Origin: Bugula neritina
Lineage: Eukaryota > Animalia > Bryozoa
Assembly (NCBI GenBank): GCA_964035545.1
Contig: OZ037773.1
Coordinates: forward strand, 3,129,751 to 3,193,750
Direction: 5' to 3'
DNA length: 64,000 bases
The position numbers and the translations under genes are program-made. Below, piece by piece: positions 16,245 through 58,104 of this stretch (within the stretch, counting starts at the first letter, position 1; each line of letters begins with the position of its first letter). Below the pieces are notes generated by a model. The model was not told where the DNA came from, did not search any database, and worked only from the letters and a program-made list of their open reading frames with translations.

Positions 16245-17816
<1,572 letters not shown>

Positions 17817-20800
17817 TTAATAAACTACAAATATCGGTGCAAAGAATACTATGAAAACTACCAGTGATAGGTGGGCTCATCAGTAAAAACAAATATGTTA
17901 CCATTCAAATGCTTAACAAATGTCAGTTAATGTACACATGTAGATGCAGTTAATATATTATATATACCTCTTCAGGTAGACACTATATATAGACTGTAGT
18001 TATATATATGTTTTCTATAGTTCCCTAGGGTATTGCATGCAGCTTGAAGCTGATTGGCTAATAACTTCAGTCATTAGGAAATAATTATTAATCTAACATT
18101 TTCTAACCTTTATCTAGTTTGTTGCCTTCAATTAAATCTCAAAAAAATAATAAGTTAGGAATAATGTCAAAGCTTTGCTAAATGATTTATAAAAAATATT
18201 TCTTGCAGACTATCAATTGATAATCTTTATATACGTAAAAGATTAGGCTATTGTCAAGTCATGTAATTTGACTATGAGCTTGTAATAAACCATATTATAG
18301 CAACATATAATGTTGATAGATTGCTAGATAAACAGGAAGTGGTAAATAGTGCAATATTATATTTTTGATATTGTGGGTAATGCACTTATAAAACACAAGA
18401 CAATGCAGCTGTGTGAGATGAATGAGATTTTTATGGTTATATATTCAAGTCATCTAACTCGATCAACTTGCAGTATAAAAAACATCTTAGAATACAACAG
18501 TTAATGTCTTACAAGACACCGAGCTCCATGCAGTGTTTTTCTTATCTTGTTCATGTATGTATATAATACAGAGTTAAATTAGTAAACTTACTCCATTTAT
18601 TGTATCATTAAAATGTTGCGTTTATTGCACCTTTGCTAAAGGACTTTAGAACTCATCGGCTGTTAAAAAAAATTGCTATAGAAATCATTTTATATATAAT
18701 GAGTTCAAATTTTAATTTTTATCAAAACACCAAGTTTGAAAATGTTAAGATTTATTAGCCAATTATAGTCTCTGTCTAAGCATTTGAAATCCTTTAATCT
18801 AAAGTAAAAGTTTAGTGACGTACCAAAAAATTTATTTAATCTTGTAGAAAAAGTATCTAAAAACTATTTTTTTGATAAATTTATTGCCAAAAATTGAGTA
18901 TGCAGTCAAATGAAATAATAAATGCTCTCTTGCATCAAAATTTGAACATGCTTGTGCAATCATCATTTTGCTAGTCAAAAATGTTGCAATAAGTTCTTAT
19001 TACAAGGCAAAAAATCATCAATCATAGTAAAGCAGTTTTTCAAAAAGTAATTTGTCCTTTATGCCGAAACATTAAAGTTATTTACATATATTTACTCTAA
19101 TACTAATATATTTGGTAATCAAACTTTTCCCAGACCCTATTGTATAAACTTTACTAAAAGTACCAGAGTAGTTTATTATAGACTACTATAATTTGTTCAC
19201 CTCAAGTTTTTTTAGAATTGGCAGAAAGTATGAAAGATGAATCGGATGAATAACTCGTCGATAAAGCGTTCATGTATTGTGAAATAATAAGGAATGCTAT
19301 TTTCTCTAAACTCTTGGTGTTTTTGATATTTTTTTTAAAAGTTTCTTATTAGTTTCTTTTTATTTAAAAATAGCGCTTATATAAATGATGCAAAAGATTG
19401 TAATAAAAAACAAGAGATATTTAGTGAATTTTTTTCCAATTTATTGCAGCATTTATTTTGTTTGAAGTATTTTAGTTGTCTCAAATTTTGGAAATACCCA
19501 ATTATTAGTATTTTTTGCTGTAAGTATACGCAATGATTGTAAATTCATGAACTTAACTTGCAATGTGTTTTGGCATAAATCTTGTTCTAATTGGACATTT
19601 ATAAAAGGATATTATAATTAGAAATGTGAGAAATTGAGTGAGAAATAGTATGAGAATTGTTAAGATACATTCATGCTTGCAAGGATTGATATACACATGG
19701 AGTCGCTACACTGTCTATATATAGTAATTAATCTGGCAAAAATGGAAGTCATGGATTATCTTGGAATCTATCTCCTATAGCATGATACAATTATCAAATA
19801 ACCACTACGCGTAATCATTCACAATAATATAGTTATCATTTTGTCACCTCTGTGTCCCTTTTACATTATATCTAATAACAATGAGGTCAAACAATGTGAC
19901 ACAGCATATGTAATATTATGTTGTATAGACTTATACGCATGGTAGTGCGTTAGTATAGAGATCAACCAAAACTGTGATAGTCTTTTAGCACTGTCTTGTG
20001 ATGTAAATATAGTACATTACATTATTTACATTATTTTGGTTGTTGTTTTTATGATTTAAAAAAATTAATAAATGTGTAAGCTTCACTAAACCATCTATTC
20101 TAAATCCATACCAAAACTCTTTTTTGTGACGAGGCCTTGCTCAACACTGCATTTAAATATTTTAGTTTAGGATCTCCAACTATATATATTTTAAATTGCT
20201 ATAACTAATAATAATTCTACTTAAAAATTTGGTTATATTTCAATAATTATTATATAGCTATAATGAAAATGTTTAATAAAAAAACGATCACAGCACATTA
20301 CATTGATTTTGCACGAGATATAACAGTTTTTGTGAAAAGTGCATGAGCAGAAAGAGGTTGAAGTACATGAAGCATGACCATAGCACATACACAGTCAGGC
20401 AGTTTATAAAATACAAAAAACACCGCTATATTATCCATTACAATTAATATAAAACAAAAACTAAAAATATTTGTTATATATTTGCATTTTAGTACTTGAA
20501 TATTTATATACTGTCATGCTAAACCAATTAGTGCTTGGTATATGCTATAGGATGCATGCAATTGCTGTTATATATAATAAAAACTATTAGCTAATGTTTC
20601 AAAAGATTTAAGCTCTATAATAAATTCATTTGATAAACATTTTAAATTTACGTGTGTGTCAAAATCAAATTAATTCATACATGCAGCTTTTTACAGAAAA
20701 TTAGTACATTTTTTTAATTAACAACACTAAAAATATAATTAAAACATTTTCCACATGAACTGTGCGTAAACAATAAAGTCACAAATAATAGTAAGAAAGC

Positions 20801-20994
20801 AAAATATCTGTTGTATTTTAAATGTACCACTTGTTGTATTTTAAAAAACATGAAGATTACAAACAAAGTTACTTATCACATAATTTCTATTTTTTTTCTA
20901 GAATAAAATAATAATATGACATCATATTATTATAATAAAGAAAATGTTAATTGAAGAGTGATGGCTATATATCCGATGTTCTTATTCAACAAAT

Positions 20995-21138
20995 TTACAG
21001 AAAATGATAATCAGTAAATAGAGATCTGTTTTCTCCTCTACATTTACAGGCACTTCCAAAGAATTTATAACTGGAGTATCCTACAAATTTGCAATTTCTT
21101 CTGCAACGGTCTCTTAAATTAGGAAGTTTATACGATAG
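20995..21138 (-). CDS. 4-Cys defensin-like exon, copy 2 (inverted)
   Basis: LSYKLPNLRDRCRRNCKFVGYSSYKFFGSACKCRGENRSLFTDYHFL*. Confidence 0.5.
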   Translation of the reverse strand, partial: LSYKLPNLRDRCRRNCKFVGYSSYKFFGSACKCRGENRSLFTDYHFL

Positions 21139-21823
21139 CTAGCCTCTGTTCTTGAAACTGTTAACAATTGTATAGAATAAGAATGCCTCAACAAGTTTGT
21201 TACATTGCACTAATGTAGGATATAAGTATACTATTTTACAGCATATAGTATATTATTATAGCTAGCAAATTATATTCAAAGCAGTACTTGATATGCAAGT
21301 TATATAAAATTGGTAAAAACCTTTAACAGGTTTTAATGTAAAACTCAGTTGAAAATATTTCACCTCTTTAATTGACGACATTGCTTTGATTGATTTCATT
21401 ACGAGACATTATTACGTAAATTGAACAATTATAGAGTTACTTAGATTATTAGTTCATTTGCTGCTGACATTGCATTAAGCAAGCTAATATTTAGAATAAA
21501 AGCAATTATACTAATATGTTATATAAAGTGTTAAATTTGCTTTCATATTCACATTGTTCAATTTACGTAATAATAATTTGTAATGAAATCAATCAAAGCA
21601 ATGTCATCAAATTTTACATTAAAACCTGTTGGAGGTTTTTACCAATTATATAATAACTTGCATATCAAGTACTGCTTTGAATATAATTTGCTAGCTATAA
21701 TAATATACCATAATATGCTGAAAAAATAGTATACTTATACCTTGCACTATAGTGAAATGTAACAAACTTGCTGAGATATTCTTATTCTATACCATTGTTA
21801 ACAGTTTTAAGAACAGAGGCTAG

Positions 21824-21967
21824 CTATCGTATAAACTTCCTAATTTAAGAGACCGTTGCATAAGGAATTGTAAATTTGTAGGATACTCTGGTTACAAATT
21901 CTTTGGAGGTGCCTATAAATGTAGAGGAGAAAACAGATCTCCATTTACTGGTTATCATGTGCTGTAA
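21824..21967 (+). pseudogene. 4-Cys defensin-like exon, copy 3, with Cys->Tyr in the CxC motif
   Basis: LSYKLPNLRDRCIRNCKFVGYSGYKFFGGAYKCRGENRSPFTGYHVL*; TGT->TAT. Confidence 0.5.
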
Positions 21968-22757
21968 ACTTATTGAATAAGAACATCGGATATATAGCCA
22001 TCACTCTTCAATTAACATTTTCTTTATTATATTAATATGATGTCATATTATTATTTTATTCTAGAAAAAATATATAAATTATGTGATAAGTAACTTTGTT
22101 TGTAATCTTCATGTTTTTTTAAAATACAAGTGGTACATTTATAATACAACAAGTGTTTTTTTTCTTAATATTACCGGTATTTGTGATTTTGTTGTTAGTA
22201 AAGTAATTTATGCACAGTTTATGTGGAAAATGCTTTAATTATCTGTGTTTATATAGTGTTAATAATTAGAAAGATGTACTAATTTTGCAAAAAGCTGCAT
22301 GTATGAATTATTTTGATATTGACACACATGCACGTAAGTTTAAAATGTTTATCGAATAAATTTATTATACAGCTTAAACTTTGATTAAAACAAATATTCT
22401 AGTTCAAATTTTTTGAAACATTAGCTAATAGTTTTTATTATATATAACAGCAATTGCATGCATCCTATAGCATACCAAGCACTAATTGGTTTAGCATGAC
22501 AATATATAAATATTCAAGTACTAAAATGCAAATATAATAAATATTTTTAGTTTTTGTTTTATATTAATTGTAATGGATAATATAGCGGTGTTTTTTGTAT
22601 TTTATAAATTGCTTGACTGTGTATGTGCTATGGTCATGCTTCATGTACTTCAACCTCTTTCTGCTCACTTTTCACAAAAACTGTTGTACCTCGTGCAAAA
22701 TCAATGTAATATGCTGTGATCGTTTTTTTATTGAACATTTTCATTATAGCTATATAA

Positions 22758-22838
<81 letters not shown>

Positions 22839-23741: not shown

Positions 23742-24635
23742 TAATTCTGACTATAGTGAATCTAAATGAGTCATACCTAAAGCTCTCATGGAAGAAGAGT
23801 TTACTTTTAATGGTATATAACTCTACAGGATCAGATCCTGTGTATATAGTTGCATCAAAACAGAAAGCGTTAGAATACTACATACTTGCATATTGATACT
23901 ACTTTAAGAGTTATCCATGACAAACGCAATAAAATGAATTAAAACTGTTAACTGCATGAAATCTAATTTTTTATATTAGGGCACTTCCAGGTTTTTTTTA
24001 AATAAATTAATTTAAGCATGATTTTGATATGAAAAATGAAGATTCTGAAATAGCCTTTAAAAATATGAATGATACTTTTTCTTGCAATGTATGAATCCAT
24101 CTATAATATATAGAAGTTGGAAATTTATCTATTACATCTTTTAATTAACTAAAAAGTAGATCTCCATTTCCGGCAATTAACTTGCATGTCAAAAAATATA
24201 AATGTTTGATTATGTACAAAAGCTCATTTTTAACTTGCAGTGGCTGGAAAGTATACTTCTACTAAGACAGACAGAGATGGACTAATTTTATCTTGTACAG
24301 ATACAGAACATTTTAACTGGAAGGATGGAAATACTGAACAAACTACTCTCATCACCGTGTGAGAGTTATGAACATTCATGCACATGAGAATTTGTTTATA
24401 CTGTTTATACATCTTTCAGATTTGGCAAAAGCGGGTCTTTTTCGAAAGCCAGTTGTCAACCCTGGAAAATCTGATGTTAAACTAGAGTGTAGTCAACTTG
24501 TGGATGCTAATCCACCACCCTCTACCTTCACTTGGACATTTAATGGAATTGTGACTACAGAAACATCTAATAAGCTGACTTTGAGTTCTCAGACAGATGA
24601 TGTAACAGAAATAGCTTTGCGTACAGCTGAAAATT
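23742..24635 (+). pseudogene. Degenerate Ig-receptor fragment (C2 half-exons and I-like exon)
   Basis: Remnants at ~23742-23845 (EEEFTF..NSTGSDPV, Cys lost, frameshift), 24241-24358 (VAGKYT..LSCTDTEHFNWK) and 24420-24635 ([26 protein letters not shown], second Cys->Arg). No TM or tail exon follows. Confidence 0.8.
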
Positions 24636-26447: not shown

Positions 26448-26512
<65 letters not shown>

Positions 26513-26515
<3 letters not shown>

Positions 26516-26781
26516 AATCTGTGGACAGCAGCTGTTTCGGGATTTGTCCCCTCATCAGCACAGAACAGAGTACCATGGCCCACACCTTCGCAATAGTAAA
26601 ACTTATAGTTTTACTAAAGCATATTTAAAAGGTGTGTAAACTCAAGCCAGAGTGCTCAAGTGACTCTAGGGGTCACCTAGGAGTCACGAGCATTGCAAAA
26701 TGCTAGCAGCTTGAGTTTGTGACCATGGTGAGAGTGCTCAATCATTTAATGTCATTGCTGAGCATTAAATGAGAGCGTAAT
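26513..26781 (-). mobile_element. Monomer of the 272-bp hammerhead retrozyme
   Basis: Same sequence as the 16311 unit with several substitutions; the hammerhead cores are retained; flanked by (TA)n. Confidence 0.9.
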
Positions 26782-28133
26782 ATATATATATATACATATA
26801 TATATTATGCTGGGGACCAGAGCATCAGTAGTTTTCAAATTGCTTTATTTCAAATTTTCTGGATCACTATACAATCAAGTCACAATTTAGTTATCACAGG
26901 CTATATACATATTTTGTAGCGTACGTATATAAATAAGTTATTTAACATATTGTGGTTTTTCACTGAATATAACTTCAGTTTTATGCCTTCAAGGGCCACA
27001 AAATGTAGGCTGGGAACCTCATCTGGCCTTGGGACTGCTTCTTGAACAGCCCTGCATTATACTAATTTTTCATGCATAGGCCTATATGTTGGTATAATTG
27101 TCTTGATTGTGTATTTTTGTTGATCCTGATACACCAACTCAAGCTGCTGTCTTGTTGAGAAGGGTAGTTGTGAGTGTTTATGTAAGTGTAAGTTTGTTTG
27201 CATAAATAGTATAATCATAAATTTATGCTGATATTAGCTCTTATAGCTGCAGTGGTAGATGTATATACTATACTATAGGTCCATTTACAGATGTGCCCGA
27301 CAGCAACAATCATTGTGGAGCCTGTTTTGGCAATAGCAAATTTGAAAATATTAGAATGCACATGCAGAGCTAAATATGGTCAAAACTAAACCATGCCTCT
27401 AAAGTATATTAACATAATTGGAAGTTTTTTATTTGTTGTCGTGAACATCTGCACAAGTAGAAATCAATGTGCATGTATTCTGTTATGGTTTTGTGAGTAG
27501 GACAGTTGAGGAAATTCAATAGAGTGTATACAAAACTACATCTTACATAAACTGCATTTTTAAAGCGTAGCATAATGAGAGTAAGTTTTTGATTAACTAC
27601 TGTAAACATTTGAACAATTTTATCATTAAATATTATTATTAATAACGCCTTTAGTTGATGCTGCCTTGTTTTATAACAACTAAAAACAATATATTTTTGA
27701 CAAATTTGGTTGCCAGTGTTAGACGCAATGTAGTTGAATGCTTTGGGTTCCAAAATGAGTGTTGAATACAAAACCATCACAGTACTGCATGCCTACATTG
27801 TAAGTTCATAAATTTATACTTAATTAGTTATATAATGCTGGTGGATAATAGTATAAAGTACAAAGTAAAATTAATCTAAGTTAATGTATTGAAAAAGTAA
27901 ACCTCTCTTAACAGCATTATGCTTATACTATCTTGGCTTTTCAATTTTGCTGAAATTGATGTATCATAATAGTAATACTAATAAGTGAATCTTCTGAGCT
28001 ATACCTCTGATTTTGACATGGTCAATAAACTAATTTTATATATTTTATATTTGTCTGATGCTATATCATGGTACAATGTATATACACTGTTTTTTCATTT
28101 AAATAGTGCAGCTGTTTGTTTTACAAGGCTTAC

Positions 28134-31100
28134 TTTTTGTTTTTGTAGAAATAACTTCTAAAAAAGTACTCTTATCATCTCCTCTTTCAAATCCTCTACA
28201 GTAAAGCTTCCTTCCAAGTGTTGAATCAGTTATAGTGAATTGAACAGAAAGAGTGAATCCTTCCGGTCTGCCCACTGAGTTACAGTCTGCATTACTGACT
28301 CCAGGTCCTTCTATTCCAGAGACAGCATTATTGTCTGAAAATAATGAATTAGCAACCAACGCATTTTCACTTTCACTACTTGGAATACATCCAGTTCTGT
28401 AGATTTTGCTATCTCCATCAGCTTCATATCGTAACTGTAAGGTTCTCAGATCAGTATAACCAGATGCTTCACATGTGAAAGTTATCTTCTCATCTTTATA
28501 GAACTCTGGTGAAGTTGTAGTACTGTATTCTATCTCTGTAGACGGTTGTGCTATATAAACATAATGCTTCAAGTTACACATGTAATATTTTTAAAATAGA
28601 GACAGTTACTTTCAAAAGTTTACCCGTGACTTCAAACAAAAATGTTAAAGAGGGAATTTCTCCCACACTTCTTCCTTCAAATCCTCTACAGCAGAGCTTC
28701 CATTCGATTGTTGGATCAGTTACACTGGGTTGTACAGAAAGAGTTGATCCTTCCAGTCTACCCATTGAATTACATTCTGCATGACTGACTCTAGGTCCTT
28801 TTATTTCAGAAACAGCATTAATGTCTGGAGGTAATGAAGCAACCCATACCGTTTCATTTTCACCACTTGGAATACATCCAGTTCTGTAGATTTTGCTGTC
28901 TCCATCAGCTTCATATCGTAACTGTAAGGTTATCAGATTAGTATAACCAGACGCTTCACATGTGAAAGCTATCTTCTCATCTTTATAGAAATCTTGTGTA
29001 GTTGTTGTACTGTAGTCTAGCTGTCTCTGTAGAGCATGCTTGTGCTATATGCAGATATGTTATATAATACTTCAAGATACACATATATTACTCTTAAAAT
29101 AGAAACAGTTACTTTTAAGAGTTGACTTTTAACTTCAAACAAAGTTGCTAAAGAGCTTTCTCCCACGGCTCCTCCTTCAAATCCTCTACAGTAGAACTTT
29201 CCTCTGAGTGTTGGATCAGTTATAGTGAGTTGTACAGAAAGAGTGAATCCTTCAGGTTTACCAACTGAGTTACAGTATGCATGACTAACTCCAGACCCTT
29301 CTATTTCAGAGACAGCACTGATGTCTGAAAATAATGAATTAGCAACCAACGCATTTGCACTTTCACTACTTGAAATACATCCAGTTCTGTAGATTTTGCT
29401 GTCTCCATCAGCTTCATACCGTAACTGGAAGGATCTCAGATCAGTACAACCAGATGCTTCACATGTGAAAGTTATCTTCTCATCTTTATAGAACTCTGGT
29501 GAAGTTGTAGTACTGTATTCTATCTCTGTAGAAGGTTGTGCTATATAAACATAATACTTCAAGTTACACATATAATATTTTTAAAATAGAGACAGTTACT
29601 TTCAAAAGTTTACCCGTGACTTCAAACAAAAATGTTAAAGAGGGAATTTCTCCCACACCTCTTCCTTCAAATCCTCTACAGCAGAGCTTCCATTCGATTG
29701 TTGGATCAGTTACACTGGGTTGTACAGAAAGAGTTGATCCTTCCGGTCTACCCACTGAATTACACTCTGCATGACTGACTCCTGGTCCTTTTATTTCAGA
29801 AACAGCATTAATGTCTGGAGATAATGAAGCAACCCATACCTTTTCACTTTCACTACTTGAAATACATCCAGTGCTGTAGACTTTGCTGTCTCCATCAGCT
29901 TCATACCGTAACTGTAAGGTTATCAGATCAGTATAACCAGATGCTTCACATGTGAAAGTTATCTTCTCATCTTTATAGAAATCTGGAGAAGTTGTAGAAC
30001 TGTAGTCTATCTCTGTAGATGGTTGAGCTATATAGACATATTATATAGTACTTCAAGTTACACATATAATACTTTTAAAATAGAAACAGTTACTTTTAAA
30101 AGTTTACCTTTGACTTCAAACAAAAATTGTTAAAGAGAGAATTTCTCGCACACCTCCTCCTTCAAATCCTCTACAGTAGAGCTTCCCTCTGATTGTTGAA
30201 TCAGTTATAGTGAGTTGTACAGAAAGAGTGAACCCTTCCGATCTACCAACTGAGTTACACTCTGCATGACTGACTCCTGGTCTTTCTATTCCAGAGACAA
30301 TGTATTGATGTCTAGAAATAATGGAGCAACTCATACCTTTTCACTTTCACTACTTGGAATACATCTAGATCTGTAGATTTTGCTGTCTCCATCAGCTTCA
30401 TATCGTAACTGGAAAGATCTCAGATCAGTAAAACCAGATGCTTCACATGTGAAAGTTATCTTCTCATCTTTATAGAAACCTGGAGAAGTTGTAGTACTGT
30501 ATTCTATCTCTGTAGACGGTTGTGCTATATAAACACAATACTTCAAGTTACACATATAATATTTTTAAAATAGAGACAGTTACTTTCAAAAGTTTACCCG
30601 TGACTTCAAACAAAAATGTTAAAGAGGGAATTTCTCCCACACTTCTTCCTTCAAATCCTCTACAGCAGAGCTTCCATTCGATTGTTGGATCAGTTACACT
30701 GGGTTGTACAAAAAGAGTTGATCCTTCCAGTCTACCCATTGAATTACATTCTGCATGACTGACTCTAGGTCCTTTTATTTCAGAAACAGCATTAATGTCT
30801 GGAGGTAATGAAGCAACCCATACCTTTTCACTTTCACTACTTGGAATACATCCAGTTCTGTAGATTTTGCTGTCTCTATCAGCTTCAGATTGCAACTGTA
30901 AGGATATTAGATCAGTACAACCAGATGCTTCACATGTGAAAGTTATCTTTTCATCTTTATAAAAATCTGGTGAAGTTGTAGAACTGTAGTCTATCTCTGT
31001 AGACGGTTGTGCTATATAAACATATTATATAATACTTCAAGTTACACATATAATATTTTTAAAATAGAGACAGTTACTTTTAAAAGTTTACCCATGACTT

Positions 31101-32005
31101 TAAACAAAAATGTTAAAGAGGGAATTTCTCCCACACCTCTTCCTTCAAATCTTCTACAGCAGAGCTTCCATTTAATTGTTGGATCAGTTACAGTGAGTTG
31201 TACAGAAAGAGTGAATCCTTCCGGTCTACCCACTGAATTACACTCTGCATGACTGACTCCTGGTCCTTTTATTTCAGAAACAGCATTAATGTCTGGAGAT
31301 AATGAAGCAACCCATACCCTTTCATTTTCACCACTTGCATGGAATACATCCAGTGCTGTAGATTGTACTGTCTCCATCAGCTTCATATCGTAACTGTAAG
31401 GTTATCAGATTAGTATAACCAGATGCTTCACGTGTGAAAGTTATCTTTTCATCTTTATAAAAATCTGGAGAAGTTGGAAAGTACTGTAGTCTATCTCTGT
31501 AGATGGTTGAGCTATATAGACATATTATATAGTACTTCAAGCTACACATATAATACTTTTAAAATAGAAACAGTTACTTTTAAAAGTTTACAATTGACTT
31601 CAAACAAAAATTGTTAAAGAGAGAATTTTTCCCACACCTGCTCCTTCAAATCCTCTACAGTAGAGCTTCCATCTGATTGTTGGATCAGTTACAGTGAGTT
31701 GTACAGAAAGAGTGAATCCTTCCGATCTGCCAACTGAGTTACAGTATGCATGACTGACTCCTGGTCCTTCTATTCCGGAAACAGCATTGATGTCTGGAAA
31801 TAATGAAGCAACCCATACCTTTCATTTTCACTACTTGGAATACATCCAGCTCTGTAGATTGTACTGTCTCCATCAGCTTCATAATGTAACTGTAAGGTTT
31901 TCAGATCAGTATAACCAGATGCTTCACATGTGAAAGTTATCTTCTCATCTTTATAGAAATCTGGTGAAGTTATAGCCCTGTAGTCTATCTCTGTAGATGG
32001 TTGTG
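28134..32005 (-). other. Tandem array of eight V-like Ig exons separated by 73-82 nt introns
   Basis: Exons 5'->3': 31592-32005 (frameshift), 31092-31511 (frameshifts, Cys->Arg), 30598-31011 (open), 30108-30524 (stop), 29614-30027 (open), 29127-29540 (open), 28624-29044 (+7 nt frameshift), 28134-28550 (open). All begin AG|xAQPSTEI and end at a GT. Confidence 0.9.
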
Positions 32006-32259
32006 CTGCGTGGAGATATATCAATGTAATACTTTAATTGTTACACAATACCTCTAATGCTGTGTACCAATATAAACAGTCAAAATAGTTCACCTACATG
32101 TAAAAAAATTATGTGAAAACGATAATATGATGTGTGCAAATTGTATGTGCCAAATGTTAATAATTCTATAGACCTTAAATTAATGTATATCATCACTAGA
32201 TTGTAAGACATGGTGATGAACGGTAAATGATATGGACCAGTTAAAGAACAAATTTTATT

Positions 32260-32345
32260 TGATGTATTGATAGATAAGTAAATCAGACAACACTGGAAGA
32301 ATTCTTGCAGTACGTTTGTCTGATTTACTTTAGTAGCAGCATCAT
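32260..32345 (-). pseudogene. Disrupted signal-peptide exon upstream of the V array
   Basis: ATG ATG CTG CTA CTA AAG TAA; homologous to the intact leader at 46617-46680 but carrying an inverted-duplication insert and lacking the GT donor. Confidence 0.7.
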
Positions 32346-32696
32346 CTCACTGCAATGATATTATATAAGCAGTTGTATATATTTTATACTATATATATAA
32401 ATATTTTGTTTTAATGCTAGTTTTAACTAATTTTTAATGATGAATAATATATTATATGCAATAATAACATATATATATAACAAAAAATATAATAAAAAAG
32501 TATTACATTAAAATATATATGTTGCTGTGTAGTTTTTTTCTGCTGTTGCGTGATCGCTAAAATTAGAAATCAATTACAATTGTAAGCTTTCCCTTTATTA
32601 TGTAAGAATATTATTATGCAGTTTCAATTCCGATAATTTTAGATGAACTTCAAAAATTTAAATAAGTTAGGTAAAATTGCATAAATTCAAATTAGG

Positions 32697-32806
<110 letters not shown>

Positions 32807-35800
32807 TTGCTGTTGTCATGCCTGGAGATGTGTATATCGTGGGATATATTAATTTCTTAATAAATAAAACAGAAGTTTCAAATTCTTCTTTAATTTAAGG
32901 TTTTTTATCATGCATTTCTATATTATAGAAAACATGATGTATAGAATACAATATGGTTACATATAAGACATTATGGCCATAATATATATAGAGAAAGCAG
33001 AATGATCATATATATGTTATAAAAGGCAATCTGACCATATATGTATATAGAAGATGCAATATATGATTGTATTTATATATAATACACTAATAGTTTCATT
33101 TATGGGTACAATATGATCATCTTATTATATATAGAGAAATGTTATAATTATCCAATATAAAATACAACAATGGTAAAGTATATTAAAAGGTATATTTTAA
33201 TATATTAAAATGTTTTTTATGTTATATTAAAAATATATATTATATTTTATATAATATATATTTTTAATATATATTATATAATATAATTTTATTATTAAAA
33301 ATATATATTATTATATAATATATATTTTTAATATATATTATATAATAATAATAATTTTAATATATATATATAAAATATATACATATATTAAAAATATTAT
33401 GTTATATTAAAATTAAATATTTATATATTTACATAGGTAAAGTATATTAAACCGATTACCCTAGGTAATGTAGATACTATAATTCACCAGTGAATTAAAA
33501 ATCTAACAGCTTGTATGAAGATTTCTTATGGGAATTCTGAGAGAACATAACTTCTACATCTTGACTTTAGAACTCCCAGTCTATACACTCTTGTATAATG
33601 CAGCACATGTATTACCAGTATATATAGTAAAGAAGAAAGCAATTATAACAGATTCTCTTGATAATTATGAGACACTCTAAGCATATAAAATAACTTTTAA
33701 AACAGTGGTATGTTATATGTATAATTATATATTATATTTTAATATCAATGATAATATCTGTATTTGTTATGCATATTGATATAATATTAGAGTGCATTTA
33801 TAGCTTGTGGGTTTTTTATTATAGCATATGACTATATTACATTGTTTTAAAAATGAGAACTGCAATAGTTATAAATTCTCTGATTTCTGTATACAATTAT
33901 ACAAGCTTCAACAGATATAAAAACCTGTATAATTTATATGCACAGTGTTGTCTGTATAAGTATTGTATCATTCACTCCACTACAATAACAATACTAAAGT
34001 TCTAATATTCAATGCATGCAGTAGCTTGTTTTGTTTGTGGATAGTTGTTTATTCATATGAATTTATTTTCTAGTTTATTTATACAAGAATAACCAAAAAA
34101 ATGTGACGCTATATAATATATTGTATTCATTATGTGCATACATGTATAAAAATAAGTTATATTTTGTGTAGCTAACTTGAATATTTCATAAGTGCTTAAT
34201 ATATAGGCAAAATGTTAGTAGTATAGCTGTATATACTTAAGGTATAGGTATGCATGTATAAGTTTCAATTATTGACAATATGCATACTAATCAGCAATTA
34301 TTAATAATATTGATAGGAATAACAAGACTTTCTGATCGACTACTTAGTCACAAGTCATTCCTATTGCTCTCTCCAGACTATGGCTTCATGTTTACATAGA
34401 AGTTGATGTGATTGGTATCTCATAACCATCCTGATCTTCTGACTGGGAGACTCTAATCTGATTCATACTATGTTTTTGGGAGTTGTCAATACACTCATAG
34501 CTATGGTCTTCAGTTCCAGTGACTGACAACTCCTCATATGTAGAAGGAACTGTGGTAGTTGGAGTCTGTGGCATTTTTCCTTAAAATAAGTTTATTTATA
34601 TTTTGAACATTAATAGAATAAGAAGTGACTTAACTTCGGTGTCACTATAGTAGAAACTATTAAGCAGTGGTTCTATGTTAAAGCTAGGTAAAGGAACACT
34701 GTTATAGTATAAAATCACCAAAAGAAGTCTAAGAGCAATGCTTTGTTAAGTATATAAAATTTGGCTCCTGATTAGCCAAGAAAACACTAAAATATTATAA
34801 ATTAGTTATAAACTTGTGAGTAATATGATTGAGCATGTTTCTACAGTATTACATAATTCATGCAATAAAGTCGCTATGAGTTAGCAGTTTATTCAAATTA
34901 TGTAATCTAAATTAATTGTATTACAAAATTCTAATACAGGCTGCTGTTATGAATAGATGCTGCTAATCAAAGACTGTCTAAGGTTGTTTACTGACTTTAT
35001 TATAGTCCACAAAAATACGCATTTATGAAGTGTATATGTAACATAATGTTCACCTTTTGACTTTCTTTTGTTATAGATGGCAACTACGACTACAGTTATT
35101 AACACTCCACTCAGAGTACCAACGAACCCTCCTATCAAGGCTCCATTATTAACTGGCTTCCTTGTAGATGTAGTGGTAGAAGTTGTAGTAGGCAGCAATG
35201 AGGATATGTTGGCAGCATTATCCCATGCTATATTCCACTTTATGGTAACTGAATTTGCTGAAACACATTAAAAATTCAAGTACTTTTTCCGAGAATATTC
35301 TTTTGATAAAACACTCGTACAATTATAATTGTTTAGCATTATAATTAGCTAGTATTGCTTTATAATTATTTCAAAATAATTATAAGACAATACTAGCTGT
35401 GATCCAATTATAAAAACGTAGGAAAATTATTACAATTGAGGCAATGACTATAAAGCACATGATAAATATTTTAAATTTAATTACATACATAAACCATTTT
35501 CAGGCGTACATTCAACTGTTTCTGTTACACCATTTGTTTGAGAGCTCAAAGCTAGCTCATTAGATAGTTCTATCATTAGTACTCCATTGTATTTCCAAAA
35601 AAAGGCAGAAGGTGTTGGGTTAGCATCCACATATTGGCTACAATCTAATTTAACATCATGTTGTAGAGGGTTAAACTTTTTCACAATTGGATTTTGAACA
35701 CCAGGTTTTCTAGTCAAGTCTACAAAACGTAAGCATATCAGTTTTGACGTTATTAAATATACCAGGGGTTTTACATTTAAAATATGAACGTGAGTTTGCG

Positions 35801-36083
35801 TATAAATGTACGGAAAGTGAAGGGCTAATGATACTCACATGGTGATTTGATGGTAGCAGTTTGTTCAGTGTTTTCTCCCTTCCAGTTAGAATGTTCTGTA
35901 TCTGTAGAAGATAATGTTAGTCCAGCTCTATAAACTTAACATTATTACAACACAATGTAAGTTTAACCTTACAATATTTTTTGCAATATGGCAACATTGT
36001 TAAGCAATGTTCTACTGTTTATACGTATTTTTAAATAACTGGATGCATATATCACAGTAACACAGAGACAGAATGTTTTATAT

Positions 36084-38151
36084 GGCCTCGACCGAGGAGC
36101 AGGCTCTTGAGGGCGTCACCCAACATTCTGTTGTTCCGCTCGGCGACTCCGTTCCCTTGCGGGTGATATGGGGTGGTCCGACTCTGGTTCACCTCCCATA
36201 TCCGGCAGAGGTCTCCCATGAGCTGGGACTGGAACTGGGCACCCTGGTCTGTATGTATCTATTCAGGTGACCCGAGGTAGCAGAATACATTTTGCTCCAG
36301 GGCCTGGGCCACCGTGCGGGCCGATGCGTCTGGAATAGCCAGAGCATCTGCCTACCGGGTGAAGTAGTCCGTGAGCACCAGTATCCAGGTGTTCCCTCTG
36401 GCATAGGCATAGGCCCAACGAGGTCTACCGCCACTACTTGCCACAGTCGACCAGCGTATAGCCAGCGTCGACCATTGGTTTCCGTGGGGCGGCGATGCTT
36501 ACTAGCTTGGCAGATCTCGCACTGCCGTACCCGCAGTCGTACATCCCGAGTCATTCCGGGCCAATACCAACGCAGCCGCATGCACCTGATGACCCGACTG
36601 GCTTCAGCATGAGCCTGTTTATGGGTGTCCCAAATCAGTTCCCGTCGGAGGGCGCGTGGACAGATGACGCGGTCCCTCTCCTGCTGACGGTTGTCTGCGG
36701 CTAACGTCATCATCGGAAGACCATCTAGACTGACCTTGAGGGAATCTCAGCAACAACAGAAAAGTTGGACCTCCCTGCCGCTGCTGTTCCTCGCTAGGTT
36801 GTCAGCCCTCCTTCTTGGCCCGGAATATGTCCGCTACTGCCCCTGGTAGCGTCTCCTGGAGTCGGCACAGATCCTTGACATTCTGGTACAGAGTGGGGTT
36901 AGCACGAAGTGCCTGGATGTCCTCAGAGTGGGTTTCGGTCCGAAGATGGCCGTGCTCCCACTGATAGACGGCGCCCTCCCCTAACTCCGTTTCCACGTCA
37001 AGGCGAGCGGGTCCCCTGTCCGGTCTCTATATGCAGGCATTGCTTGCAGTCCTCTACCGGCCGACGATTCATGCCGTCGGCGTTCCCGTGCTTCCAGCCA
37101 GCACGGTGCTCTATCCGGTAAGAGAACGCGGCAAATATCTCCAGCCAACGAGCTACCTGGCTTGAGGGCTCCGCACGTTTACACAGCCATATCAGTGACG
37201 CATGGTCTGTTCGCAATCGGAACGTTCTCCCATACAGATATGGTCGAAAGTGCTTGACCGCCTTGACTACTGCTAGGAGCTCCTTCCTAGTGGTGCAATA
37301 GTTCTTCTCGGCAGCCGCGAGAGTCTTGCTATAGTAAGCTACAACCACCTCACTTCCACCCTGGACTTGGGACAGAACAGCTCCCACATTGTGGTCACTG
37401 GCGTCTGTGTCCAGGATGTACTCCTTGGCTGGGTCAGGATACGCCAGAATTGGCGCCTCCATTAGCCGTTGCTTGAGGTGGTCAAACGCCTGCTGCTCCT
37501 CCTGTGCCCACTGCTACCGGACCCCCTTGGCAGTCAGCCGATTTAACGGCTGAGCCATCCCTGCAAAGCCAGGTTTGTACTGCCGGTAGTGCCCTACTAG
37601 GCCCAGGAATGCACGCAACTCAGGGAGATCGCGGGGGACAGCCCACTTCTTCACAGCCTGTACTTTCTCTGAGTCAGTAGCGACCCTATCACGGCCAACA
37701 ACGTGGCCCAGGTACGTAACCTTCGGCTGTAAGAGTGCACACTTGAAAGGCTTCAGCTTCAGTCCAGCTGCCCGAAGACGGTCAAAGACCTCCCGCAGAC
37801 GACTGACATGAGTCGCAAAGTTGGGAGATTACAATGACGTCGTCCAGATAGATCAGAAGGGTCTTCCAGTGTAAACCACTGAAGACCTGCTCCATGAGTT
37901 GTTGGAAAGTTGCCGGGGCAGACGTAAGCTCGAATGGCAGTACTTTTCACTTTCAGAGCCCATCACGAGTAATGAATGCTGCTTTGTCCTGAGCATCAGG
38001 GCTGAGGGGCACTTGTCAGTATCCGCTAAGTAGATCCAAAGTACTAAAGTACTTGCTACCCGCGAGGGCATCCAGAGACTTATCTATCCGTGGGAGAGGG
38101 TAGGCGTCCTGGATGGTAACGCTGTTGAGTTTGCGTTAGTCCAACACAGAA
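36084..38151 (-). mobile_element. pol: Degenerate Ty3/Gypsy pol fragment (RT, RNase H, integrase)
   Basis: DAYPLPRID, IYLDDVI, YLGHVVG, APILAYPD..ILDTDASD..GAVLSQ..YCTTRKELLAVV..LRTDH, H..AH..WYWPGM..CEICQ and TTPYHPQGNGVAERNNR; many frameshifts; GC-rich; no LTR seen. Confidence 0.92.
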
Positions 38152-38467
38152 CTCAGATTAGTATAACCAGATGCTTCAAATGTGAAAGTTATCTTCTCAT
38201 CTTTATGGAAATCTGGTGAACTTGTAGTACTGTAGCCTATCTCTGTAGAAGGCTGTGCTGGAGATATATTATAATACTCTAAGTTACGCACTACTTTATA
38301 TTACTTGTAATTATTTTCTATTTGAAGGAGCCGATATCACCTTGCTGTAGCGTTATGTTTGATAGACACAGAAAGATGGTAAGATGCTGCAAAAACAGAG
38401 TGCTGCAGAAAGCTGCCATCAAGCCTCAAGCATATGTAGAACAGTCATTGTAAAATCTACCGACTAC

Positions 38468-38863
<396 letters not shown>

Positions 38864-40259
38864 ACAATACCAATATAATTATGCTGTTGAAGGTAAATTA
38901 TTTCGTGATTTTAAAATATTTGCATTGTGTTATCAGATTCAATAAAAAAAACTATTGCAAACGCTAGTTGGTAAATATTGATAACCTTCTACACATCCTA
39001 CAAAAAGAGTTTTAAATCTAGAGCCGGAAAATTATGAAACAATATATTATATAATAAGGCAATCAGCATATAAATTGCTACCTATAGCAATGAGCACTGA
39101 TTTGCTATAATACTGCTTGCCAATATATACAACCATTATAATGTATACAAATTATAATTATATTAAATTGTAATAATATAGATCGAGTATAGAACAATTG
39201 TTACCTGCAGCGTAGATAGATAAGCAGACCAAACAATACAGGAAGTGGTAGTAGCACATCATCTCACTATAACATAGTACACATAGTAATTACAATTTTA
39301 CAATAATTTCATAGTTTATGATATTTTTTCATTTTATTTAAATATTTTAAGTTAGTTTTGAATATCATTCCCTTCATTTAGTTTTTTAACTGCTGATTGC
39401 TAACATCATAATTCAAGTATATAACTTAACTCTATATTCTATCAATAAATTATATTCACAATACAAATAACGGTTGCAGCAAAAAAGTTCCCAGTGTAAT
39501 TTACTATTCTAACTACTCTAACTTAAGAGTCATATGTATATTTGTCAATTCTGAAGTTTTCAAAAACACTAATTTCTATAAATAGATTTTTCTCTAGCAG
39601 TGAATTTGCGGTAAATATACAAAACTAATTGTACGTGAATGCAGGGAGGATATAACTTCTATTACCTTCAGTTTATTTCTGCATACATATATTATCAGTA
39701 TGTGACAAGTATTTATTAATTGCCATTGTTAAATTGAAGTGTGTCAACTAAACTACTTCCAACTATAGAACTGATGCTGTTATAAGCACATATATGGTTT
39801 TATAACAATAATTAGCAACAAGTTCAATATAAGATCGCTCATAGAGACTTTACTTATAGGTAACATTGTAGTATGTTGAATAAATTGAATTTTTTTTAAT
39901 CCAAAAGACGATTCTATATTTCTTTGTATCCTAATGTTGAAACGAAATAGTACAGTATATTCAATAAAGAAATCTCAGGAAGCGATATTATATTAGGGTA
40001 TAGGGGCACACGGGTGTATTTTAGCAAACGAAAATATGCACCACAAGTAAAAAAAGTTTTTACTGTACATAATTATGCCCATGTCAGATTACAGTCAAAA
40101 CCCAACTGTGAACGCGTTTTTGAGACTGAGCGTTGCACTCTGTGACGTCACAACTGTCTGATTTCTGAACGCCACTGTCAATTTTTTATGATGCATTCAG
40201 CATTTGATATGTCAAATGCTTAATTTTTGCGCTTAGTGATCATTCATTTACTGACTTGA

Positions 40260-43200
40260 TTAGGAGGATTAACTGGGGCGCGCGCGCCCATCGTTCATAG
40301 CTTCTAACCGGTTTACTTTCCTCCGCAGTGAGAATAAACCCTTCGTACACTGCTGCAATCGCCTGTGTAGCCGATGGACTTTATCCTCATGAGTGCAGGA
40401 TTGGGAAAAAATGTTGCAGGGAGGGAGGTAAAATTGGTTGGGCGAGGAATGGTATGTGGAGTTTAGGGGAAAGTGCTGATGAGTCGGGAAGTAGTGTTGG
40501 AGGATCGTGAGGTAGGGTTAGTGCTAGAGGGTTGGGAGTTAATGGTTGACGTTCAGGAGATAGTACTGGAAAGTCGAGAGGGTCGGGGTCTTTTCCGTAT
40601 TAGGGAAACTTGAGTGGGGTCCAGCACAGGGTTGTTGTTTACTCTGACCAGCACAACCTAAAGAGGTTGGGTGGCTACTGGCTGGCTGGCTGTCGTGAAT
40701 TCCTTGACATCTGTGTCCTCTCTCACTAGGGACACGTCAAAAACCCCTGGATGAGAGCTGCTCGCTTGCGGGGTCCCCGAGGTGGGGCATGATGAGGTCG
40801 CGGAACTCCGGGAATGTGGTTTCATCAACCACAAATGTCCTACCCACTTGGCAATGAGCTATGCGCTGGTGGCGCAGCACATAGTCCCGCTGGTAGGAGT
40901 ACTCCCCACACTGGCAAAAGACATTGGCATAGTGTTAGGGGCAAGAACCCTCAGTCGCCGAACAATGGAAAAAAAATTTTCTGCATTGGCGACACTTGAG
41001 ATTGCCCGTTTCACCACGCGCTCTGCCAATTCAGAGCCAGGCTTCTTTTGTGATTCAGTGTTGATAGGTGGCCACCATTTTAGGCAGCCTCCATCCATGG
41101 ACGTTTTTGCCAATCTGTACCGCTCCGCCGTCCAAGATAACCTGCTCTTTCTTCGCAGGTAGTTGTACTTCTTTGGGTTTTGAAATAGGCTCCACTAGAG
41201 TGACAGGATGTTGCTCATCAAGTTTGGGGGAATCCTACAGGCCGGTGGCAGCTGAACCAGGGTTTCTAGTGAAAAAGGGGCCGAGCTGACTCGCCCCGGT
41301 TTCAGTAAAGTCTGTCAGATTATCTGGAACAGTAAAGACAGGCTGTGACTGTCCGATTGTACTACTGCCGAAATTTGGCATTTGCCTATACAGTGCTCTA
41401 ACAGCCAGAATTTCAGGTAAATTTAAGATTGCTGCCAACCCCATGTCCTGATTCGACAAGTTGTCCAAGGAAGATTCGTCTCCTAATTTCATGTGGAATT
41501 CTATAAGTAGGGTGGTTTCAACCCAATTGATTAAAGAAGATTGATTAAAAGTTGGGCTAAACTCCGAGAATGGAGAGTCAAGTCTTAAAAAAATACCTGA
41601 CTGATCGTGGTTGTCCGACGTTTCTGGTAAAGTTATTCCCATTTTATATTGTTGAGGAGTTGAAATTGTGCGTCTCTTTGCGACTGAAGTAAGAGTTAAA
41701 ATGATTAAACCTTGTGGCGTCAGATTTTCATATGACAACCCTTCGGTCACATGCTCGGTCAGTTTCTCTGACGATCTTCAGTAGGGTAACTTTACATGTT
41801 GGACCTCTTCCAATTTTTGGCCCGCGTTTTCAACTCTCTCAAGAGAACCTTTCCATCTTATGAGGCGTTTGTCCACGTGAAGGTCAAAGTATATACCTGT
41901 ACCAAGTGCACAACTCTTTGGTAGGGGTGTTCCCATGTACCCCACGTAGTAATCAGCCAGATATCCTGAGAATTTCCTGCTTTTTTGCTGTCTCTCCAAG
42001 TTGATAGACACTGGTGCATCAGCTTTTCTGGTGGTTTTGGCAAAGGGAGGTGTTTCACCATTGTTCTCTCCAGTCGTGGAGACATCTTCTACCTCTGGGG
42101 CCGCTGAGATTGGCCCTGGGGCTAGCTGACCTAAGGATCTAGAAGAAAGAGGAGGGTCAGGTGTTTTGTCAGGTGTACTGTCAGGCTCATCAGGATCACA
42201 AACAATTATTTCCCACTCTCTAGGTCAGGCTACCCATCCTCTGGACATGGGCCAACAGGTTGGCTCCAGGAGCGGGGATGCTTGGCCTGTAGCCTCCGGG
42301 CTACTATAGTATAGTTTTAACCGTTGCTCGTTCTGAACCAAAATTTTTGTCTTGAGTGTTTCATGCAATATGTGTGGTTGGGTAAGACCTCCACTAGACA
42401 GGAGGGCCCCATGAACTTGGGCTGCAGTTTAGCCAACTGTCTGCAACGCCTACGGTAGCTAACCATTCATACCCAGTATCCTACATGTATAAGGGGAGTT
42501 CTTCTGAGTCCTCCGTTCTCACTCTCCACTGTTTTTTTCAGAGAGCATTGTAAACCTCCTCCATAGTATTTATCAACTTCCCTACATACTCGTGTACTGG
42601 GGACTTGGGTGCTAGAACGTAGTAGTTTAGGTGTTCTGGAACCCGGGTCTCTCGATCAAGCATCAAGAGGTTTGAGGTCTCCTGTGTGCTAGAGTGTAAT
42701 GTGCTACAGTAGGCCCCCATGATTTGAGACAACACCACATCCTTTTCCTCTTGACTCCGGCCTAAGATCAGGCTTCTGAGGGCGTCACCTAACATACGAT
42801 TGTTCCTTTCCACAACTCCGTTCTCTTGCGTGTGGTATGGGGTAGTCTGATTATGGTTCACCCCCGTATCTGGCAAAGGTCTTCCATTAGTTAAGACTAG
42901 AACTAGGCACCCTGGTCAAAGTGGGTCTGTTCGAGTAGTCCAAAGCAGCAGAACACACTCTGATCCAAAGCTCGAGCCACTGTAGGAGCTGATGCATATG
43001 TGATATCCAAGGCAACTGCCCAACGAGTGAAGTGGTCCGTGGGCACCAGTATCCAGTTGTTCCTTTGGCGAATAACAGCATTGGTCTGACTAGGTCAAAT
43101 ACTACTACCTGCCACGGTCGACCAGCGTACAGCTAACGCCGACCGGTGGTTTACTTAGGGCGGCCATGCTTGCTAGCCTGACAGACCTCGCACTGCCGCA

Positions 43201-44320
43201 TCCGCAGTTGCACATCTCGAGTCAATCCGGGCCGGTACCAATAAAGCTGTAGACACCTGATGACCCGAATGGCTCCAGAATAGGCCTGTTTATGGGTGTC
43301 TGACATCAACTCCTATCAGAGAGTGTGTGGACATACGACGTGTTCCTTTTTCTGGTGACGGTTGCCTGCTGCCAATGGTATAGTAAGAAGGCCATCTGAG
43401 TTAACCTTGAGAGAATCTCAGCTGCGACAGAAATGTCGGAACTCGACATTACACTGCTGCTTCTGCTTTCCAGTAAGTCGGTGACCCTTCTTCTTAAACC
43501 AGAATATGTCAGCTACTGCCCCTGATAGTGTCTCCTGGAGCCGGTACAATTTCTTGACGTTTTGGTACAAAGTGGAGTTGGCCCGGAGAGCATTGACGGT
43601 GTCTGATTGGGTTTCGAGTCGAAAATGACCATCCTCCCAACTATTGACGTCACTGCCCCAACTTTTCCTTTACGTCCAGGTGAGCGAGTCTCCCCCTCTC
43701 GTCTCTCAATGTGCCAGCGCTGCTTACAGTCCTCCCCGGGCCGGCAGCTCATGTCATCAGCATTCCCATGCTTTTTCCCAGCACAGTGTTCTATTCGGTA
43801 AAAAACTCAACAAGGATCTCCAGCCAGTGAGCTACCTAACTGGAAGGCTTAGCACGTTTGCACAGCTATATCATTGATGTATGGTCAGTTCTCAACCTGT
43901 ATGCTCTTCTATACAGATATGGCCGGAAGTGCTTGATTGCTTTGACTACTGCTAGGAGCTCTTTTCTGATGGTGCAGTAGCTTTTCTCAGCACTCGACAG
44001 AGTCTTGCTGTAGTAAGCCATTACCACCTCTGTTCCACTCTGGACCTGGTGCAGGACAGCCCCCACACTGTGGTCACTAGTGTCAGTGTCCAAGATGTAC
44101 TTTTCAGATGTGTCAAAATACGCCAAGATAGGCACCTCCATTAGCCAATTCTTGAGGTGGTCGAAGGCCTGCTGCTCCTCCTGTGTCCACTGCCATCAAA
44201 CTCCCTTGGCGGTTAGCCAATTCAAAGGCTGAGCCACTCCTGCAAGCCCTTGTATATACTGCCTATAGTACCCTACCAGGCTCAGGAATGCCGGCAAATC
44301 AAAGAGGTCTGGGGGGGGAC
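40260..44320 (-). mobile_element. pol: Second degenerate Ty3/Gypsy fragment (RNase H, integrase, extended 3' region)
   Basis: VPILAYFD..ILDTDTSD..RKELLAVVKAIKHFRPYL, TTPYHTQENGVVERNNRMLGDAL and the pol-end motif RKFSGYLADYYV. It is related to, but diverged from, 36084-38151, and lies in a ~4.6-kb insert (~39995-44590) absent from the paralogous upstream regions. Confidence 0.85.
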
Positions 44321-46089: not shown

Positions 46090-46680
46090 TCAGTTACAGT
46101 GAGTTGTACAGAAAGAGTGAACCCTTCTGGTTGGAATTACATTCTGCATGACTGACTCCAGTTCCTTTTATTCCAGAGACAGCAATAATGTCTGGAAATA
46201 ATGAAGCAACCCATACCTTTCACTTTCACTACCTGGAATACATCCAGTGCTGTAGATTGTACTGTCTCCATTACCTTCAGATCGTAACCGTAAAAATCTC
46301 AGATTAGTATAACCAGATGCTTCACCTGTGAAAGTTATCTTCTCATCTTTATAGTAATCTGGGGAAGTTCTAGTACTGTAGTCTATCTCTGTTATAGATG
46401 GCTGTCCTGGAGATATCTTATAATACTTCAATTGTTACACAATACCTCTAATACTGTGCACCGATGTATTTTCAAAATAGTTCGCCTATAACATGTAAAA
46501 AAAAATTTATGCAAAAAGGATAATTATATAGACCTTATTGTATACCTGTTACCTGATTTCAAGACATGGTAACAGGTAACGGTAAATGATATGGACCAAT
46601 TAAAAGCAAGTTTTACTTGATGTATTGGTAGATAAGTAGATTAGACAACACTGCGCAAGAAGTAGTAGCATCTCGATCAT
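46090..46680 (-). pseudogene. Leader exon plus a truncated, frameshifted V-like exon
   Basis: Leader 46617-46680 (MIEMLLLLAQCCLIYLSTNTS). V exon 46406 to ~46090 has Cys->Gly, the same -1 frameshift (ERYGLLHYFQT) as 31592-32005, and a truncation at a duplication junction. Confidence 0.82.

Positions 46681-47687: not shown

Positions 47688-47987
<300 letters not shown>

Positions 47988-58035: not shown

Positions 58036-58104
<69 letters not shown>

Follow-up and report, generated by a model that had tools for sequence, protein, structure and literature searches.

A 64,000-nucleotide stretch of the Bugula neritina genome (hereafter the window; positions are counted from its first letter) carries on its minus strand a tandem array of eight exons resembling V-set immunoglobulin (Ig) domains, close to a cluster of receptor genes with intact exons of the same type. 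The array is probably non-functional, a tandemly expanded series of leaderless pseudo-exons left by a dead gene lineage that had two V exons. It shows tandem exon duplication, unequal crossing-over and gene conversion churning an undescribed family of bryozoan V-set receptors, and for annotation its eight exons are not to be counted as genes, or as a diversification machine, on sequence alone. A preliminary description of this DNA had offered three readings: Dscam-like alternative exons, a chicken-like reservoir of conversion donors, and a recently decayed multi-V gene. The last of these proved the best, but three corrections to it were needed.

Array anatomy and two-exon sister loci

Tandem Repeats Finder reported a single array at 28179-32007 (period 487, 7.8 copies, 85% matches, score 5528), and exon borders were set from an alignment of all copies (Table 1). 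The eight exons, E1 to E8, are 414-421 nucleotides (nt) long, and every one is preceded by AG, followed by GT and in phase 1 at both ends; exon length is divisible by three in seven of the eight, the exception being E7 (421 nt). The splice donor is GTAAAC in six exons, GTCAAC at E6 and GTAAGC at E8, and the seven introns, I1 to I7, measure 80, 80, 73, 80, 73, 82 and 73 nt in order. The period and the alignment thus bear out the earlier description of eight phase-1 exons on the minus strand, repeated about every 490 bp and separated by introns of 73-82 nt. The exons starting at 30598, 29614, 29127 and 28134 (E3, E5, E6 and E8) are open, as had been stated, and the other four, the first two included, are broken. 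An internal mini-intron of 25 nt (GTATGG...CAG) was considered as a rescue of the E1 and E4 frameshifts and rejected, being too short and failing to restore the phase. The window as a whole (G000:C9:3129751-3193750) is AT-rich (about 30% GC). On the plus strand, antisense open reading frames (ORFs) of 78-81 amino acids occur at 28548-28784, 29538-29774, 30522-30758 and 31007-31252, each covering an intron together with the 3' portion of the exon before it, and have probably arisen as a by-product of duplication.

Short-read contigs of run X1 matched the window with zero differences at 28922-29198, which covers the 5' lesions of E7, and at 31942-32600, which covers the dead leader of the array, so that the lesions at both places are not assembly errors. 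Further contigs of this run were exact at 27721-28120 and 28091-28317, and one matched 30461-30642 with a single difference. The X1 contigs extend over introns and flanks and hence represent DNA; the joints found in them have short sides and 90% likeness, and paralogues, for example an exon of the type found at the two-exon locus L002, explain them best.

L002 (C9:3235000-3244999) lies about 80 kb away; to either side of the array the window and L002 are colinear, but L002 has only two V exons in between. Window positions 35929-32167 align to L002 9538-5931, E1 and E2 together to 5934-4961, and E7 and E8 with about 680 nt of flank (29083-27455) to 5879-4252; the 3' flank of E8 is found in the genome at the window and L002 only. 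A C-type receptor gene lies upstream of L002, as in the window, and the non-coding flanks of the two loci differ by 13-18%. The two-exon gene is also present, again disabled, on contigs from a related host (L043 and L044), whose identity to the window is 79-87%. Within the window, 31677-35929 is colinear with 46082-49565, which identifies the exon p46 as a paralogue of E1. The array had been called an orphan; it is instead the expansion, from two exons to eight, of a small gene known at L002, p46 and L043/L044.

None of these relatives is intact. Of the two L002 exons, pL2a carries a TAG codon and pL2b has four insertions or deletions (indels) and two nonsense codons; at L043, Va is open in a shifted frame only and Vb has two stops. 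Maximum-likelihood analysis grouped the array exons with p46 and pL2a in one clade (bootstrap 88), apart from all 23 intact exons, and every non-array member of that clade is broken. A +2 insertion was observed at the same spot, after CAGTAC, in E2 (near 31480), L002 pL2b and L043 Va, and the same Tyr codon is TAG in pL2a and L043 Vb. Either these sites are hotspots or the lesions were spread by conversion.

E8 has an unusual 3' end, with a 33-nt read-through to a TAA stop, and the final exons of L002 and of L043/L044 end in the same way; the ancestor therefore consisted of a leader, then Va and, beyond an intron of about 80 nt, a terminal Vb. This gene had no C2, transmembrane (TM) or tail exons of its own, and its product may have been a secreted protein of two V domains. 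A search by tblastx of the minus strand between 23000 and 28140 found no C2, stalk or tail exon, in agreement with the earlier statement that no C2, TM or tail exon follows the array. The idea that the ancestor was a receptor of the V-C2-TM-tail kind did not survive: E8 is of the terminal type, with an in-frame stop, as in the two-exon loci.

The leader upstream of the array is dead, as first described: its seventh codon is a stop, about 28 nt have been inserted and the GT donor is lost. The insertion copies the 3' part of the leader itself in inverted orientation and gives a perfect 15-nt inverted repeat (32276-32330); it looks like a templated, hairpin-type insertion. Both the insertion and the change of the donor from GT to AT are identical in kind in the window leader and in the L002 leader. 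The leader of p46 (46617-46680) is still open. As the lesions are common to the window and L002, the leader died before the two loci separated and before the array grew from two exons to eight, and the decay was thus not the recent event that had been proposed.

The repeat units are mosaic. Divergence is only about 1-4% in the 3' half of E3, E5 and E7, in the intron behind each of them (I3, I5 and I7) and in roughly the first 190 nt of E4, E6 and E8. In the remaining parts it is 7-16%, the units differing overall by 5-20%. E1-I1-E2 resembles E4-I4-E5, and a +1 lesion near the 3' end is common to E1 and E4. Such a pattern is characteristic of unequal crossing-over that recurred with shifting breakpoints, and some of these events, at least, took place once exons had been broken and the leader had died.

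These observations suggest the following course of events. The ancestor would have been a small gene lying 3' of a receptor gene. Its signal-peptide leader would have been followed by a first V exon, which about 80 nt of intron separated from a terminal V exon ending at its own stop. A templated insertion carrying a stop, together with loss of the splice donor, would have destroyed the leader, after which the locus was presumably duplicated. In the window copy, unequal crossing-over with shifting breakpoints could then have multiplied the exon pair to eight. Since that time frameshifts and one nonsense codon would have accumulated, framework residues been lost, and conversion tracts occasionally been received from intact paralogues; the four open exons may simply have escaped, the lesions so far being too few to hit every exon.

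The V-set domain and its family

A search of Pfam-A with hmmscan (E up to 10) using the longest two ORFs of the array, those that include E8 and E6, returned no family. V59 (59254-59664), an intact exon of the family, was modelled with AlphaFold2 (AF2) from a family alignment of 29 rows, and the model had a predicted local distance difference test (pLDDT) score of 91.0 and a predicted template modelling (pTM) score of 0.87. The top 50 Foldseek matches to this model were all V domains (VHH, VH, CD8 alpha and T-cell receptor V-beta) at probability 1.0, and VIA-align gave Z scores of 10.7-12.1, with a root-mean-square deviation of 2.5-2.9 Å over 113-117 of about 116-120 residues. The modelled structure argues that the domain is a true V-set Ig fold that is invisible to Pfam. 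The label 'V-like' given in the preliminary description therefore holds by fold, as judged by AF2, Foldseek and VIA-align, but not by sequence profile, for which Pfam was blank. C26 and C116, the Cys pair of the B and F strands, are invariant in 29 of 29 family sequences, as is a second pair, C54 and C88, which is atypical; each pair would be expected to form a disulfide.

Intact exons of the same type occur in the neighbouring receptor genes at 61204-61614 (V61), 59253-59666 (V59) and 51053-51466 (V51). At least 77 six-frame matches to the exon type were found in the 216-Mb assembly, nearly all on the contig of the window. A profile search of 1.84 billion representatives gave 45 matches, mostly unnamed single-exon ORFs from metagenomes; besides vertebrate Ig proteins, the sole named distant matches came from Bugula neritina and Watersipora subatra. 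The closest relatives lie on JGI contigs labelled AY690838, the accession of the B. neritina mitochondrial genome. Searches of public data by word index and by HMMER profile yielded no array-type protein other than the partial P0027. Metagenome scans by protein and by intron pattern gave no match, a weak negative since records near this genome were excluded, and a literature search found no description of such a V-set family in bryozoans. The family is most likely a lineage-restricted, fast-evolving and undescribed V-set branch of the immunoglobulin superfamily that belongs to a bryozoan receptor cluster.

Decay, exchange and possible use

To compare open array exons with functional ones, a conserved set of 68 alignment columns was defined by at least 95% conservation in the 23 intact exons. 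Intact exons deviate at 0-5 of these columns (mean 1.2), and the open exons E3, E5, E6 and E8 at 17, 14, 9 and 13, respectively. Among the changes are F99S, L105P, Y117C and W65L, which affect the beta-strand core and the residue before the F-strand Cys. The weakened donor of E6 (GTCAAC) was also counted for decay.

The ratio of nonsynonymous to synonymous substitution rates (dN/dS) was estimated from phylogenetically independent pairs. Intact sister pairs gave 0.53 (p = 1e-6 against 1) and the array 0.72, which does not differ significantly from 1 (p = 0.059), with 0.84 for A-type pairs, 0.96 for E1-E4 and 0.53 for the E6-E8 pair. The ratio near 1 that had been named earlier as the mark of a decaying pseudogene was seen for the A-type pairs and for E1-E4, but the contrast between array and intact exons was not significant (Fisher p = 0.20) because the V domain evolves fast even when functional. 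Changes private to E3, E5 and E7 comprised 17 nonsynonymous and 7 synonymous substitutions, which fits neutrality and the ratio of intact exons alike. Lesions per exon from E1 to E8 numbered 2, 2, 0, 3, 0, 0, 2 and 0. These counts fit a Poisson distribution of mean 1.1 (dispersion test p ~0.2), and a half-open array therefore needs no exon-specific selection. For the orthologous pairs E1/pL2a and E2/pL2b, the number of lesions was about that expected for their divergence.

Several results do not sit well with purely neutral decay. In four independent pairs with 138 differences, one nonsense substitution was found where 6-8 were expected (P 0.003-0.013), a shortage driven partly by E6-E8 and no longer significant when that pair is left out. 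The introns are less diverged than the adjoining exons (mean pairwise 7.8% versus 12.5%; matched blocks p 0.02-0.10). A 49-nt island following the E8 donor (28085-28133) is 92-98% identical in the window, L002 and L043, with exon body and flank on either side at 74-83% (about 80%); it might be a 3'-end signal or encode a short Cys-containing C-terminal tail. Finally, the drift accumulated since the death of the leader, about 0.06-0.075 substitutions per site per lineage as taken from the 13-18% flank divergence, leads to an estimate of 2-4 disabling lesions per exon, and the chance that three lineages (A-type, E6 and E8) stayed open is roughly 1e-4 to 1e-2, a rough figure that depends strongly on the assumed indel rate. 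Most of this misfit is attributed to a reticulate history of mosaic duplication units and imported tracts, though it could also reflect residual function. Part of the exon divergence, namely that between Va and Vb and that of the terminal end of E8, is attributed to the time before leader death, and some to import. Introns less diverged than exons are the reverse of the pattern of a constrained coding gene.

Residual function could take the form of splicing from another leader to one to four of the open exons, the broken ones being skipped and the product ending at the E8 stop. Secreted proteins with a variable number of V domains would result, by cassette choice and not by Dscam-like mutual exclusion. 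The leader of the dead gene C (39205-39262), to which the preliminary description had pointed, was confirmed as an intact signal-peptide exon with a GT donor in phase 1, the phase needed by every array acceptor; cassette splicing is conceivable because this phase fits any array exon. The flanking AG and GT kept at eight of eight exons, the lengths divisible by three at seven of eight, the paucity of nonsense codons compared with neutral drift, and introns and a terminal E8 island better conserved than the exons would all be accommodated, and the in-frame stop of E8 makes a further exon unnecessary. However, a retrotransposon in the V exon has ruined gene C itself, the gene C leader is 7-11 kb from the array acceptors with the gene C exons and tail in between, the open exons are without near-invariant core residues, and the donor of E6 is GTCAAC. 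In addition, all sister loci are dead, the dN/dS of the young A-type exons is near 1, selector or docking pairing is lacking, and public data hold no array-type protein fragment but one partial. Such splicing is considered unlikely.

Dscam-like exon choice in the strict sense was not upheld, with no downstream constitutive exon, no docking/selector pairing and half of the exons broken. An inverted-repeat scan of 27400-32600, in which weak or gapped pairings could be missed, gave only AT-rich or exon-internal pairs as candidates for docking/selector complementarity, and no site pairing with all array introns. In invertebrates an intron of 73-82 nt has sufficient length to be spliced serially in the ordinary way, so nothing enforces mutual exclusion. 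Nor is the array embedded between constitutive exons of an intact gene: its own leader is dead, no downstream exon was found, and E8 has its own stop.

It is improbable that other haplotypes or individuals carry a live copy of the gene and that the assembly holds a null, expanded allele, the kind of presence/absence and copy-number polymorphism typical of immune-type clusters. Samples X6 and X7, from the same organism and study, hold almost no exact array words and have zero depth over the array introns and upstream flank, the exon parts being covered at 90-95% by paralogues; the birth-and-death dynamics of the cluster would also agree with such an allele. The leader lesions, on the other hand, are old, being common to L002, the related-host locus is broken too, and the Logan contigs drop rare or low-coverage sequence, so that the gaps in X6 and X7 are not proof of absence.

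A donor reservoir, in which leaderless V segments are copied by germline or somatic conversion into neighbouring functional V exons, would account for a leaderless, half-open array in the same orientation as functional V genes 19-33 kb away. Exchange between array and intact exons was looked for at 23 diagnostic sites, at which the majority state of intact exons differs from that of the array, and by counts of private states. These were used in place of a Sawyer-type longest-run permutation test, whose significant runs fell mainly in the family-wide conserved 5' region and which was dropped as confounded by rate heterogeneity. At the diagnostic sites no run of array-type states was found in any of the 23 intact V exons, those of genes D and E included; such states were scattered singly, one exon having two about 40 columns apart, and V51, V59 and V61 had none. 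A genome-wide BLAST search with array-specific segments found no locus outside the array lineage above 85-87% identity.

One exchange was detected. In alignment columns 276-344, E6 differs from V61 at 2 of 69 positions and from its array siblings at 7-8 of 69, and its private states there equal the intact-family majority (4 counted versus about 0.6 expected), which gives the direction of the tract as from an intact V exon to the array. In the sole detectable case of conversion the array thus appears, from these states, as the acceptor. Conversion tracts from the array into the V exons of D and E, which the earlier description had raised, were absent at the diagnostic sites of the germline assembly, and with no germline footprint the comparison with a chicken-like donor reservoir was not sustained. 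The array/intact exchange that such a reservoir requires does occur, at E6, but it runs the wrong way; the intact exons hold no array-type runs, no non-array locus exceeds 85-87% identity, and the would-be donors have degraded frameworks (9-17 of 68 near-invariant positions changed) with four of eight broken. This role is very improbable. An artefact of assembly, with the repeat wrongly expanded or mis-joined, is scarcely credible: a tandem unit of about 490 bp does invite mis-assembly, but units differing by 5-20% are easily resolved and X1 contigs match unit-specific stretches.

Alternative-exon use, a donor role and other readings in which the array is still used carry together a low probability, and it is quite doubtful that the cassette has been kept partly open through use, either by splicing to a foreign leader or by somatic donation to neighbouring receptors. 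If it has, the shortage of nonsense codons, the conserved introns and the terminal island would be signs of selection and not of reticulate history. Continued use would make the array a rare invertebrate case of cassette-based V-domain diversification, in a colonial animal that may need self/non-self discrimination, and would bear on how allorecognition or immune diversity arises outside vertebrates. Decay of a tandemly expanded two-V gene is the explanation preferred here.

The surrounding cluster and known systems

The features of the array and of the receptor cluster around it are collected in Table 1.

Table 1 Coordinates of the array, its parts and related features. Positions are those of the window unless a locus is named.
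Feature	Position	Strand	Remarks
Array of eight V-set-like exons with seven short introns	28134-32005	-	Tandem Repeats Finder; borders from alignment of all copies
Leader remnant of the array	32253-32345	-	ATG at 32345, stop at codon 7, insertion 32301-32330, donor GT to AT
E1	31592-32005	-	414 nt; broken: -1 and +1 indels, three stops in shifted stretch; +1 common to E4
E2	31092-31511	-	420 nt; A-type; broken: +2 and +4 indels, first Cys to Arg
E3	30598-31011	-	414 nt; A-type; open; 17/68 near-invariant family positions changed
E4	30108-30524	-	417 nt; B-type; broken: TGA at Trp codon, +2 and +1 indels
E5	29614-30027	-	414 nt; A-type; open; 14/68 near-invariant positions changed
E6	29127-29540	-	414 nt; B-type; open; weak donor GTCAAC; tract of ~70-90 nt like intact V exons
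E7	28624-29044	-	421 nt; A-type; broken: +3 and +4 insertions at 5' end
E8	28134-28550	-	417 nt; open; terminal-type; 3' end unlike other array exons
E8 read-through past nominal donor	28099-28133	-	11 codons, then TAA (28099-28101)
Downstream flank	27455-28098	-	Homologous to flanks of the two-exon locus L002 and of L043
L002 two-exon locus	L002 4954-5839 (G000:C9:3239954-3240839)		Both exons broken, short intron between
Gene C, dead, upstream of the array	34461-39262	-	Leader 39205-39262, C2-like exon 35487-35765, tail 34461-34544
p46, orphan E1 paralogue downstream of gene D	46001-46406	-	Broken by several indels; 3' end cut off
Gene D	48227-51865	-	Leader 51788-51865; V 51053-51466; Ig halves; C2 49135-49377; stalk; tail 48227-48298
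Gene E	56853-61826	-	Leader 61752-61826; V1, split Ig, V2, split Ig; C2 57755-57997; tail 56853-57116

The V exon of gene C is cut at about 38145 by a GC-rich retrotransposon. Retrotransposon pieces occupy 36000-38150 and 42500-44350; they are 75% alike, have a GC content of 46-56% against about 30% for the genome, and contain RNase H-like or integrase-like ORFs at 36189-36713, 36998-37462 and 42538-42876. A nearly perfect (AG)197 microsatellite (38468-38860) lies in the leader-V intron of gene C, about 210 nt 5' on the minus strand of the truncated V exon. Beyond the 3' end of the array, a plus-strand gene converging on it (24240-24634) contains an Ig-half exon together with a C2-like exon whose second Cys has been substituted (ALRTAEN versus ASCTAEN); no tail exon was found for it, and it is probably another pseudogene. 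Further along, a 272-bp tandem repeat (16308-17682) has about five copies at 99.5% identity and a solitary copy at 26509-26782, 95% identical and about 9 kb off, and it is flanked by a large inverted duplication, 8844-15087 and 17807-22773, whose 2-3.7-kb pieces are 88-89% identical. Rfam at its gathering thresholds reported no RNA family anywhere in the window, the 272-bp repeat included.

The Alr family of Hydractinia consists of clustered single-pass receptors with an N-terminal V-set fold that profile hidden Markov models (HMMs) miss; its cytoplasmic tails hold tyrosine motifs, and partial duplicates and pseudogenes lie among the live genes (PMC9546547). It is the nearest described analogue of the cluster studied here, sharing the cluster type, the V-set fold missed by HMMs, the tyrosine motifs in the tails and the interspersed pseudogenes (PMC9546547). 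Unlike Alr, the present family belongs to the phylum Bryozoa and has no detectable sequence relation to it. Whole genes were duplicated in Hydractinia, whereas here one exon type of a single dead gene was multiplied eight-fold, with introns of about 80 nt.

Like the psiV-lambda and psiVH arrays of the chicken, the array is made up of tandem leaderless V segments, some of them open, near functional V genes. Chicken pseudo-V donors keep their framework residues and demonstrably donate tracts. The bryozoan exons, in contrast, have degraded frameworks, half of them are broken, no tract donated by them was detected in the germline, and the one tract found runs in the opposite direction.

With the Dscam1 clusters the array shares tandem Ig-domain exons of the same phase and equal length. 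The clusters of Dscam lie between constitutive exons of a live gene, all of their variants are intact, and docking/selector pairing enforces the choice of a single one; the array differs in having no live leader, no downstream exon, no docking/selector pairing and four broken exons.

The amphioxus VCBPs are secreted proteins that combine a chitin-binding domain with two V domains, the latter identifiable from their sequence. The ancestral product proposed for the array, a signal peptide followed by two V-type domains without a transmembrane segment, would have been similar in plan. It would differ in having only a short Cys-containing tail after the second V domain, and unlike the VCBPs it is a product deduced from genomic sequence.

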